64,000 nucleotides of DNA from Felis catus (taxonomy: Eukaryota): NCBI RefSeq assembly GCF_018350175.1, contig NC_058372.1:39866001-39930000 (forward strand), given 5' to 3'. This document shows, piece by piece, positions 12,893-21,223 of this stretch. The notes under the pieces were generated by a model. It worked only from the letters and a program-made list of their open reading frames with translations. It was not told where the DNA came from and made no database searches. Each line of letters begins with the position of its first letter. The first letter of the stretch is position 1. The position numbers and the translations under genes are program-made.

Positions 12893-13045
12893 CTAGGTGG
12901 CAACGGCAAAGCCCACCCTCTTGTTGCCAATGTCGAAGATGGAATAGTAGGACCTGAGGAAGACGTCCCCGAGGATCCACAGGGGCTGGCCACTGCTAGA
13001 GGGCAGGTAGGTGGCCTGGACTCTAATGGCACAAATGTCATTTCC
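12893..13045 (-). CDS. PGC: PGC exon 9 (coding part)
   Basis: [50 protein letters not shown]. Confidence 0.93.
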
Positions 13046-19000: not shown

Positions 19001-21223
19001 TGCAAAGTAGATGGTGCAGCACACCCCCAGGGCCTGGCCTCAGACTTTGCCGGTAGAGAGAGGGAGCCCCAGGGAGGACGTCAGGACTCACATCCAGGAA
19101 GGCCAGGGGCTCGTAGACGGCACTGAGGTTGCCAAAGTGGTACTTCTGCACAGGGTCGTGCTTGGGGGTCCTCAGGAACTCCCCCAGTAAGCCCTTCTCC
19201 TTCATGGTCTCCCAGATGGACTCTCGTTTGCTCAGGGGGACTCTGCAGAGGGACTGGGGTAAGGACGGGGCCTCCCTCATTCCTACAGCACCTCTGATGG
19301 TCCCAGTCCCTTCTCCCCCCCACCCACCCGCCTCTCCATCTCCAGCCACATGCCCCAGACTCCCTGCTCCTCTGTCCCGTGTGCCCATCTGCTCTGGCTC
19401 CAGCTCTGGCCCTTTCTCTCTGTCTCTGTCTCTTTCTCCCTCTGCCTCCCTCTTTGCCTCTCCCTCTCTTCTTTCAAAAATCTTCTCAGGACTTGCTCCA
19501 AGATTCAGAAAACAAATACCTCCACCCATGCCTGCCCACATCTCATCTCAAGGCTCCTCATCCTTCCCTGGCCCTCTGTTCTCAGGTATCCCATAAATTC
19601 CTTCCCAGAAAGGGGAGGGGACTTCGGCCATTACCCTTGGCAGGATATACGCTTTCTCTTTTATGTAAGCTCTGCGTGCAACGTAGGGCTTGAATTCAGG
19701 ACCCCGAGATCAAGAGTTGCGTGCTCTACTGAGTACGCCAGCCAGGCAGCCCAGGATATGTGCGTTTATAAGAAAGATTTCAGAGATGGCAGAGCTCCCC
19801 CCAGATCCTCTGCTATGGTGGTCCTCAGGCACCTGACCCCGGCTGATGTGACAGAGCATGGGTAGAGGGGACAGCACTAGACTGGGACTCAGAAGACAGG
19901 GTCCCAGGTCTGCCCACACTGCTAATCCCCTAGCCTGGGGCTCATCACTGCTTTTCTCCAGACACCAGGCAATGCGGAAGTTGGCCTGGGTGGTCTGGGG
20001 CCCAGATCAGCTCTGGAATTGGAACTTCTGAGTTCTGGGCTTCTGCCCCCATCCCCTTGGCTGTCCTCCTCCAAGACCAGCTTGCTGTCATTACATAAGG
20101 GGCCTCTGTGGGTCCACCCAGGCTCGTTCCAGACTCCAGAAGTGCTGCTTCTTTCTTTTCTTTCCCCATCCGAATCCCCATTCCGTCAGGACCCCTCATT
20201 CTTCCGAAATTCTTAGCTACAGCCATTCACATTGAGCTGTGAAAACTGACGATTGCTTGGCTCACCATCTCGACAGAATTTGCATATCGCAAACAGATTT
20301 GTCAGAGGAGCTGGAGGCACCAGTCTTTAAGGGTCACATAGCAAGCAGTGTGCAGGCCGGGAGCGCTCTGGAGGTCCTGGACGCCACGCCTCCTGCTCCC
20401 TTTCTTCTGACACCTTACCTGGCACGTAGACATCACCTTACCGCTGTTTCTGCTTCAATGATTGTGCCATCTGCGCTATAAATTTTGGGCCTTAAGGGAA
20501 TTTTTAGCAAATGTCTGCCTATCCAGAAATAATCGTTCCTTTCTGCAGGAGGAAAGCAATCCTGCCATCCGGGGTCTGTTTGGACAACCACCAACAGAAT
20601 TAAGTCTGCAGAAAGGCATGCGGCCCCAAGTTAAAGATTACAGGGGAAAACCCCAGGATGCTGAAGACAATGAAAACAAAGCCCAAGAGAAGAAGGAATG
20701 AATTAGCCCGCGCAATCCCAAGGTGTGCGGCCTCTGCTTTTGTTACCAGAGATAGCATCACTCACACAAATTGCTGAGATGTTTTGCAGATCCAGACCAG
20801 GGAAGGGAATGACCACCCAGTCACAGTTGATGAAACCGGACAGACCAGGGCCGGAAAGACAAGTCAATCAGTCCTGAAGTTGACCCGATCCCTGACCCAT
20901 CAGAAGAACCCACGACTCTCAGCCCCCTACCCTGCGTGCAGCATTAGCGCCCCGTTCTCTGAGTGGTGTAACACCAGTAAAGAGGCCTGTCTTTCTTCAC
21001 CATGAATGCTCAGAGTCTGTCTGCTGTAAAGGCTTGCTGGGCATCTAATGGACAAACTCTCCTTTGGTTCAGTTGTAGACGTTTCCTGAGGGCAAAGGTT
21101 GTAGCCCCTTCTGCCTCGGACGCCCCAACCCACACCTGCTCCGGCAGCCAGGCCCCAGACTCACTTGACCACTGCGGCCTCCAAGAGCTGGAGGCTGGCC
21201 AAGGCCACCACCATCCACTTCAT
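12893..21223 (-). CDS. PGC: Progastricsin / pepsinogen C, 9 coding exons, 1170 nt, 389 aa (whole-gene span)
   Basis: Hand-spliced [26 protein letters not shown]...FDTGSS...VDTGTS...RVGFAVAT*. Exon sizes 59/151/118/119/200/123/148/99/153 follow the pepsinogen pattern. TFEB-FRS3 synteny. Confidence 0.95.
13737..13835 (-). CDS. PGC: PGC exon 8
   Basis: [33 protein letters not shown], 99 nt. Confidence 0.92.
14246..14393 (-). CDS. PGC: PGC exon 7 (second catalytic Asp, IVDTGTS)
   Basis: [49 protein letters not shown], 148 nt. Confidence 0.95.
14925..14967. repeat. (TG)n microsatellite in PGC intron 6
   Basis: Direct reading. Confidence 0.95.
15022..15144 (-). CDS. PGC: PGC exon 6
   Basis: [40 protein letters not shown], 123 nt. 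Confidence 0.92.
15260..15470 (+). repeat. Degenerate ~37-40 bp minisatellite (GGGCTCCCTGAGGCAGGGCTGTGTCTCCCCCTCAGACT), about 5 units
   Basis: Recurring CTGTGTCTC...CAGACT...CTCCCTGA. The unit resembles the L2 3' end. Confidence 0.75.
16395..16598 (+). mobile_element. Felid-type SINE in PGC intron 5
   Basis: GGGGCGCCTGGGTGGCTCAGTC head; TSD AGAAGCCCAGGAAGAA on both sides. Confidence 0.92.
16757..16956 (-). CDS. PGC: PGC exon 5
   Basis: [18 protein letters not shown]...[10 protein letters not shown]...PVFSFYLG, 200 nt. Confidence 0.93.
17435..17553 (-). CDS. PGC: PGC exon 4 (flap, YGSG)
   Basis: [39 protein letters not shown], 119 nt. Confidence 0.93.
18039..18289 (+). mobile_element. Carnivore SINE in PGC intron 3 with (TC)n and A tail
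   Basis: GGGGTGCCCGGGTGGCTCAGTTGG head, (CT)n, AAATAAATAAA tail. Confidence 0.9.
18689..18806 (-). CDS. PGC: PGC exon 3 (first catalytic Asp, LFDTGSS)
   Basis: [39 protein letters not shown], 118 nt, GTAAGT donor. Confidence 0.95.
19092..19242 (-). CDS. PGC: PGC exon 2 (activation peptide [17 protein letters not shown]...YEPLAFLD)
   Basis: CAG acceptor, GTGAGT donor, 151 nt. Confidence 0.93.
21165..21223 (-). CDS. PGC: PGC exon 1 (signal peptide [19 protein letters not shown])
   Basis: ACCATG start, GTGAGT donor. Confidence 0.93.

Follow-up and report, generated by a model that had tools for sequence, protein, structure and literature searches.

The gene for progastricsin (pepsinogen C, PGC) of the domestic cat lies on the minus strand, at 21223-12893, of a 64,000-nucleotide stretch of Felis catus contig NC_058372.1 (hereafter the window), and encodes a mature enzyme that has largely lost the acidic make-up of gastricsins. 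This charge loss points to a changed working pH or role, of which we found no description in literature searches covering cat or feline gastricsin and pepsinogens, gastricsin isoelectric points (pI) and a charge shift in PGC. The explanation that we prefer, and to which we give an even chance of being right, is that cat PGC is a functional accessory protease, released from its charge constraint on the carnivoran stem and not specialised for pH 2 or below. A first-pass annotation of the window had read the gene as an intact but charge-neutralised gastricsin that may have been repurposed, and its overall interpretation is partly supported.

Counted from Ser60, the cat mature enzyme has 330 residues, including 11 Asp, 9 Glu, 3 Lys, 13 Arg, 7 His and 6 Cys, which gives exactly the 20 acidic residues, 16 Lys/Arg and 7 His of the first-pass count. 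Each of the basic residues listed at that time is present, and they are distributed over both lobes, in line with the claim that the neutralisation is spread out and not local. With the Biopython pK set the pI comes to 5.9, and with an EMBOSS-type set to 6.4; at pH 2, calculation gives the enzyme a net charge of about +24, compared with +5 to +10 for ordinary gastricsins. A low pI of the enzyme moiety (below about 4, with few Lys, Arg and His), which is typical though not formally defining of mammalian PGC1, is thus absent from the cat protein. Across all vertebrate PGC and pepsinogen B (PGB), the enzyme moiety has a pI of 3.1-4.8, with 3.35 in human (Castro 2012), in agreement with the acidity of human gastricsin that the annotation had given. 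The composition that it gave for the human enzyme (about 26 Asp/Glu, 3 Arg, no Lys and 1 His) is matched by the Saimiri protein P0151, the representative of a 53-member cluster, with 26 Asp/Glu, 3 Lys/Arg and 1 His.

The shift is not peculiar to cats. The annotation had proposed an alignment of orthologues, with their pI, across Carnivora and outgroups, and there the ordinary gastricsins showed no comparable basic counts (3-8 Lys/Arg). The carnivoran PGCs (n = 18) have a pI of 4.7-6.6 with 8-17 Lys/Arg and 5-10 His, whereas the non-carnivoran mammalian PGC1 proteins (n = 25) have a pI of 3.28-3.83 with 3-8 Lys/Arg and 1-3 His. All 18 of the former lie above all 25 of the latter in pI, Lys+Arg and His, far beyond chance. 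Within the order the degree varies by family: Lys+Arg is most extreme in cats and the striped hyaena (16-17), lower in bears and panda (12-13) and lowest in mustelids (8-9, with 8 His). The closest paralogue family is pepsin B, known from dog and other carnivores and also present in cats; the carnivoran PGB proteins keep the ordinary acidic make-up (pI 3.5-3.95), unlike carnivoran PGC. Because every carnivoran PGC examined is shifted while carnivoran PGB stays ordinary, the charge shift is a feature of PGC alone and extends across the order Carnivora. The unusual charge noted in the first pass is therefore real and lineage-specific, but it is Carnivora-wide and dates from the carnivoran stem instead of being a felid event.

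The gene in the window is the cat orthologue of PGC1, both by tree and by synteny. In a tree of 58 PGC and PGB proteins (FastTree, LG+gamma), cat PGC fell inside mammalian PGC1 (support 0.99), and the carnivoran PGCs formed one clade (support 1.0) next to the pangolin proteins, in agreement with the species relationships (support 0.56). PGB formed a separate clade (support 1.0) that excluded cat PGC, which is 53% identical to lynx PGB; the possibility that cat PGC is itself pepsin B was rejected by this position. A tandem duplicate or hidden paralogue was rejected as well, given the single PGC copy in the window (tblastn) and the placement within PGC1. Cat PGC is about 70% identical to its non-carnivoran orthologues, which are about 85% identical among themselves. 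One felid sequence in the same 90% cluster, the 391-aa protein of Prionailurus iriomotensis (GAB5571505.1, P0298), is named 'pepsinogen B precursor', probably a naming slip carried over from the dog Swiss-Prot entry.

Over all of its 389 residues the product matches gastricsin XP_003986180.2 of Felis catus (P0297) exactly; the other felid proteins compared depart from it at 3-8 residues. Pfam PF00026 (eukaryotic aspartyl protease) covers residues 73-387 as a full-length domain (E 4.6e-104). Exons 5 and 7 each match Pfam Asp on their own (exon 5, E 9e-15), and the best PDB match of exon 5 is human gastricsin (1AVF/1HTR, E 1.5e-21). Chymosin and cathepsins D and E, also A1 proteases, are much richer in basic residues and active at mild acidity. 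They represent other paralogue families, with E values of 1e-8 to 1e-12 in the PDB search compared with 1e-21 for gastricsin. Both catalytic aspartates (Asp32 and Asp218, cat numbering) are present in D-T-G motifs, as are the flap Tyr75 in Y-G-S-G and the six cysteines (Cys45, 50, 209, 213, 252 and 285) that give three conserved disulfides, all as the annotation had stated; the D-T-G aspartate, Tyr75 and six Cys columns are invariant in the protein alignment. Cat and other mammalian PGC1 (human 1HTR, 1AVF) share the 9-exon plan, a nearly equal length (389 and 388 aa), the signal peptide, a 43-residue prosegment with pLys37-pTyr38, the D-T-G pair, Tyr75, the three disulfides and the S1/S1' core residues. 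They differ in charge (16 Lys/Arg and 7 His in cat, 3-8 and 1-3 in the others; pI about 6 against 3.3-3.8), in the neighbours of the subsites, in the loss of pArg14 and Tyr9 and in the gain of one sequon. Cat PGC is accordingly predicted to be a catalytically competent aspartic-protease zymogen, and its sequence points to a bilobal pepsin fold; the AlphaFold2 model was poor, with a mean pLDDT of 49 from an input alignment of 45 sequences.

To place the change in time, we compared PGC branch lengths and lineage-specific substitutions, with the polarity of changes set by three-taxon comparison only. In the FastTree tree the carnivoran stem branch measured 0.223 substitutions per site, compared with about 0.11 for the whole pangolin lineage from the same node, while the path from the carnivoran crown to the cat tips was 0.125 and branches within Felidae were 0.005-0.014. 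The Tajima relative-rate test counted 78 unique changes in cat and 22 in pangolin (p 2e-8), and bear and sea otter showed the same excess over pangolin as cat. Since the feliform-caniform split, the unique changes number 30 in cat and 15 in bear. PGC thus underwent a burst of change on the carnivoran stem, at about 3.5 times the pangolin-lineage changes, and then slowed down. As a rough estimate, using approximate divergence dates, the stem evolved at several times the background rate and the later branches near background. The carnivores are all fixed for a change at seven sites that are near-invariant in 24 other eutherians, where five other orders have 0-2 such positions; by a looser criterion, 32 positions are derived order-wide in Carnivora.

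The burst did not strike the protein at random. The cat sequence differs at 12% of 108 sites that are invariant in 40 non-carnivoran PGC and PGB sequences, and at 21% of PGC1-invariant sites compared with 41% of variable sites. Since conserved sites were hit less (12% vs 41%), purifying selection acted even during the burst. Annotated ORFs of 389 aa come from at least 13 felids, with 11 distinct sequences among them, from 8 mustelids and from bears. A neutral copy would stay intact over 40 My, approximately the feliform stem, with a probability of at most 4e-4, in an estimate for which the nonsense fraction (3.6%) was measured and the indel and splice-site rates were assumed. The claim that the gene is intact holds: with its hallmarks kept, conserved sites spared and ORFs in at least 13 felids, it is selectively maintained with no decay. 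As judged from these sequence comparisons, cat PGC is under selection.

The direction of the charge change can be explained without selection for basic residues. The cat lineage has 18 charge-raising and 3 charge-lowering changes, whereas in six other lineages, the fast mouse and rabbit among them, 17 of 206 changes raise the charge and 42 lower it (Fisher p 7e-6). The charge-raising share of the cat-lineage substitutions is 24.7%, compared with 24.2% expected from random non-synonymous mutation of a starting protein that is acidic and poor in basic residues, and gains of Lys, Arg or His make up 19.2% compared with 19.3% expected. The shift described as 'directional' in the first pass is therefore one-sided, but its share equals the mutational one and implies no selection. 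As the charge-raising share is that of the mutational supply, a released low-pI constraint suffices, and the simplest reading is that a filter against basic residues was switched off in carnivores, rather than that these were favoured. Fast substitution alone was rejected as the cause, as the mouse and rabbit PGCs are equally fast and have a pI of 3.3-3.5. GC-biased gene conversion is an unlikely driver, the stem branch excepted: among residues with GC-rich codons, only Arg rose markedly (by 7.2) and Ala slightly (by 1.8), with Gly and Pro unchanged. The Arg codons of cat PGC (9/15 AGR) and the intron GC of 0.56 also weigh against a GC-driven bias.

The substrate-binding and zymogen regions were compared by alignment to human numbering and the published subsite lists; the conserved prosegment residues, the subsites and the zymogen logic follow Castro 2012. 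The S1 core (Leu30, Tyr75, Ser77 and Phe112) and the S1' core (Tyr190, Ile215, Leu293, Ser295, Leu301 and Ile303, human numbering) are kept in cat. Next to them, order-wide or felid changes include M7L, A13L, L73V, Q74R (felids), T81R, F83I, F84Y, T90R, G109S, T110P, N111Y and Q116K. A Leu->Arg replacement adjoins the S1' tyrosine (L189R, human numbering), and the loop around Arg288 is reshaped. Thr81 is a highly conserved threonine (Castro 2012).

In the prosegment, carnivores have 8-9 Lys+Arg compared with 10-12 in the ancestral or ordinary state. The residues pLeu7, pSer12, pGly21, pLys37 and pTyr38 are kept, and the full PGC1 set of prosegment residues plus Tyr9 is not retained in cat: pArg14, which pepsinogens in general conserve, has become Trp in every felid examined, and Tyr9, which together with two other residues caps the catalytic Asp pair, has become Phe in felids and hyaena (both roles from Castro 2012). 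The Pfam A1 propeptide matches cat PGC with only 23.3 bits against a cut-off of 20.5. The fewer basic prosegment residues (8 in cat) together with pArg14->Trp and Tyr9->Phe suggest that the zymogen latch is weakened in cat. An N-x-S sequon at mature residues 57-61 occurs in nearly all carnivoran PGCs and is rare elsewhere, and cat PGC is probably secreted and N-glycosylated. A second, N-L-S, sequon spans the activation site in Felis, Lynx, Acinonyx, Leopardus, Herpailurus and Prionailurus. Panthera and Neofelis, where Ser60 is Asp, lack this sequon, which is hence a small-cat feature that is not felid-wide.

The preferred explanation would run as follows. On the carnivoran stem, during the burst of change, the usual pepsin filter against Lys, Arg and His would have been lifted, and charge-raising replacements accumulated at the rate of mutational supply, with the predicted fold, three disulfides, catalytic Asp pair, Tyr75 and S1/S1' core retained, before the rate fell back. 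The outcome in cat is an enzyme of pI about 6 with a weakened zymogen latch. In pepsinogens the basic prosegment is held by acidic residues of the enzyme and freed on their protonation (Castro 2012). With fewer acidic and more basic residues in the enzyme, a less basic prosegment and two latch residues lost, we infer that the cat zymogen would open at milder acidity, with activation and activity at roughly pH 3-5.5. An enzyme that is heavily positive at pH 2 may be less at home in strong acid and stabler toward neutrality, and changed pH behaviour is the natural inference from the sequence. Cat PGC would then be an accessory protease, probably a gastric one still, with the strong-acid work left to pepsin A and two pepsin B genes; beside these it would be tolerated or useful, yet expendable. 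Fish pepsinogens C offer a parallel, as they likewise combine a less basic prosegment with a less acidic enzyme, from which a less acidic activation pH has been inferred (Castro 2012). Their shift is small (moiety pI up to about 4.5) and comes from a prosegment deletion, whereas the carnivoran shift is of several pH units and comes from point substitutions.

Several points weigh against this explanation. Charge-lowering changes fall somewhat short of expectation (4.1% vs 8.6%), significantly so in sea otter (p 0.003) but not in cat, and there may have been a mild push toward basic residues. The clustering of changes beside the subsites (T81R, Q74R, N111Y, L189R) may be a sign that a new specificity was selected. 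Acid lability is not proved by basic residues alone: chymosin and certain fish pepsins with a higher pI are active in the stomach. Finally, the stem burst may have been adaptive rather than a release of constraint, given the positive selection on PGC in the carnivoran lineage that a branch-site test gave in a one-line mention by Wang et al. 2016 (PMC5100049).

Expression and gene losses in other carnivores bear on the role of PGC. Progastricsin is typically activated by acid, has its pH optimum at about 3 and is released from chief and mucous neck cells of the stomach. In the stomach of the red panda, PGC, PGA5 and PGB were all up-regulated in adults, PGC by both RNA-seq and qPCR (PMC11200446), and the suggestion that the gene has left gastric duty finds no support. 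In dog, PGC is a pseudogene that was probably replaced by PGB (Ordóñez et al. 2008, PMC2441467), which fits the first-pass remark that carnivore stomachs yield mainly pepsinogens A and B. Searched with bear PGC, the protein database yielded no PGC for canids, for pinnipeds with RefSeq annotation, for meerkat or for spotted hyaena, and the genomes without a database PGC protein each yield two pepsin B paralogues. These database proteins suggest that PGC was lost repeatedly among carnivoran lineages, which an accessory status would explain. Carnivores, including cats, have two pepsin B paralogues ('pepsin B' and 'pepsin B-like'; P0346, P0347, P0344, P0351) on the same contigs. Because both copies occur in feliforms and caniforms, the duplication predates the carnivoran crown, and it may have made PGC redundant.

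Some of the retained models look damaged. Those of the striped hyaena (P0272) and American black bear (P0315) are flagged LOW QUALITY, and the former carries an insertion with two Cys as well as Leu->Pro three positions ahead of the catalytic Asp32. The only seal PGC model, from the southern elephant seal (P0273), is missing two short mature stretches (one at the base of the flap) and both termini. Shorter predicted isoforms (323, 357 and 360 aa) in mustelids, giant panda and puma (P0301, P0303, P0305, P0308, P0314, P0275) may reflect either real exon skipping or annotation around defects.

One alternative, which we consider rather improbable, is that PGC stayed a mainstream gastric enzyme and that positive selection on the stem re-tuned it, in pH profile or in substrates, to demands such as large meat meals with strong buffering power. 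The burst followed by slow evolution, the seven strictly fixed carnivoran changes (0-2 in other orders; 32 by the looser criterion), the many fixed changes adjoining S1, S3 or S1' residues and the adult up-regulation in red panda stomach would all fit adaptive re-tuning, as would the brief published statement that 'PGC in carnivora' is positively selected (PMC5100049). However, the charge-raising share is no higher than mutation gives, and the final charge varies among families, from 8-9 Lys+Arg in mustelids over 12-13 in bears to 16-17 in cats and hyaena; since these values differ so widely, no common charge optimum was reached. Branch-site tests are also misled at times by relaxed constraint or multi-nucleotide changes. 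The dog pseudogene, and the presence of PGB with no database PGC in canids, seals, meerkat and spotted hyaena, would be odd for a mainstream enzyme.

Equally doubtful in our judgement is that PGC changed jobs without duplication and became a glycosylated protease of mild-acid to near-neutral pH with altered subsites, working outside the bulk gastric lumen. Such a change would have been possible once pepsin A and the duplicated pepsin B covered strong-acid digestion, and mucus, secretory compartments or granules, lung and reproductive tract are the candidate sites. A pI of about 6 is within the range of non-gastric relatives, and human PGC has roles in lung and seminal tissue. The new N-x-S sequon at mature residues 57-61, the weakened zymogen latch and the plausible cover of gastric duty by PGA and two PGB genes are consistent with repurposing, and extragastric sites of human PGC are on record (PMC5442862). 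Against it stand the developmentally regulated expression of PGC in red panda stomach together with PGA5 and PGB, and the repeated carnivoran loss, which argues against an important new function. The first-pass annotation had drawn a parallel with the pregnancy-associated glycoproteins (PAGs). These are pepsin-family members that left digestion, are glycosylated and often less acidic, and form large placenta-expressed gene expansions, many with altered catalytic centres. The parallel is weak, as cat PGC is a single-copy orthologue (one copy in 64 kb) at its ancestral locus, with the catalytic motifs and the S1/S1' core intact and neither hallmark of the PAGs, the multigene expansion and the altered catalytic centre.

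That the gene is functionless and on its way out, merely without a disabling mutation so far in cats, is very improbable: the dog pseudogene, the LOW QUALITY hyaena and American black bear models, the gapped elephant-seal model and 13 changes at ultra-conserved sites in cat would fit decay, but the intact ORF of equal length in at least 13 felid species, 8 mustelids and bears, the low probability of neutral survival over the roughly 40-My feliform stem (at most 4e-4), the avoidance of conserved sites (12% vs 41%), a within-Felidae rate at or below the mammalian background and the retention of all catalytic and structural hallmarks disfavour it.

The gene model was anchored at its exon ends by sequence reading and comprises nine exons on the minus strand, with 8/8 introns of GT..AG type and a CDS of 1170 nt (389 codons plus stop) free of internal stops. 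The first pass had given 12893-19124; this is the same gene but covers only the part for the mature enzyme, and exon 1, the TATAAA box and the start of exon 2 lie upstream. The intact ORF, TATA box, poly(A) signal and canonical splice sites that it had claimed were all found by direct reading. The TATAAA box is at 21311..21316, 88 bp 5' of the ATG (21223). The coding part of exon 1 (21165..21223) holds the start codon, signal peptide and first propeptide residues, ending in phase 2 at a GT donor. Exon 2 (19092..19242) encodes propeptide, the activation site Leu43p/Ser1 and mature residues 1-11, and carries the felid pArg14->Trp and Tyr9->Phe changes as well as the N-L-S sequon of Felinae. The first catalytic D-T-G-S (Asp32) and the Cys45-Cys50 loop are in exon 3 (18689..18806), with Tyr44->His, and the N-A-S sequon and the flap with Tyr75 in exon 4 (17435..17553), with Gln74->Arg, Thr81->Arg and Thr90->Arg. 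Exon 5 (16757..16956) covers the S1/S3 helix region, where G109S, T110P, N111Y, Y114H and Q116K surround the retained Phe112. Lys163, His174, His177, Arg178 and Arg190, the last adjoining the S1' Tyr, are in exon 6 (15022..15144). Exon 7 (14246..14393) has the second catalytic D-T-G-T and the Cys209-Cys213 loop, exon 8 (13737..13835) Cys252, Arg267 and Arg280, and the coding part of exon 9 (12893..13045) Cys285, Arg288, conserved S1' residues and the TAG stop (12895-12893). An AATAAA polyadenylation signal follows at 12770..12775, about 117 nt 3' of the stop codon.

Upstream of PGC on the minus strand, an FRS3-type IRS PTB exon was identified at 47102-47437 (Pfam PF02174, E 3e-15). A second PTB-region exon (44495-44911) and a long FRS-like last exon (42406-43467) were also seen in this FRS3-like gene. 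TFEB and FRS3 are the published neighbours of the PGC locus (Ordóñez et al. 2008, PMC2441467); the FRS3-PGC order in the window is as expected, and PGC is at its ancestral locus downstream of FRS3. No TFEB coding exons were found in the window. A GC-rich stretch (GC 0.65) at 10001-12000, 1-3 kb downstream of the PGC poly(A) site, fits by its position a candidate CpG-island promoter of the neighbouring gene, in other mammals TFEB. Within the PGC introns there are two carnivore-type tRNA-derived SINE copies, at 16385-16600 (intron 5) and at 18040-18290 (intron 3), the latter trailed by a long (CT)n run and an A-rich tail, and a (GT)n microsatellite at about 14925-14968 (intron 6). Elsewhere, the region around 30-32 kb is AT-rich (GC 0.35), and runs of N at 30678-30854, 31540-31699 and 51833-51988 total 493 bases. 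Six large ORFs of the flanks had no Pfam match, and the ORF at 22397-23221 had no match in the ESM Atlas.

Pepsins are textbook proteins for life at pH 2, almost without basic residues, and in Carnivora an otherwise well-kept gastricsin lies 15-20 charge units from every other vertebrate orthologue. This bears on annotation and diet-evolution studies that treat carnivore PGC as an ordinary gastric enzyme, and on the veterinary use of pepsinogen assays. The graded charge steps, from mustelids to bears and then cats, form a natural series for questions on the A1 family: how surface charge relates to acid stability, to the pH of zymogen activation and to the pH optimum, whether pepsin B redundancy permitted the change, and why dogs, and apparently seals, meerkat and hyaenas, lost PGC. 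If the change of job were true, carnivoran PGC would show in nature that pepsins owe their extreme low pI to an adaptation to pH 2 and that this adaptation is reversible.

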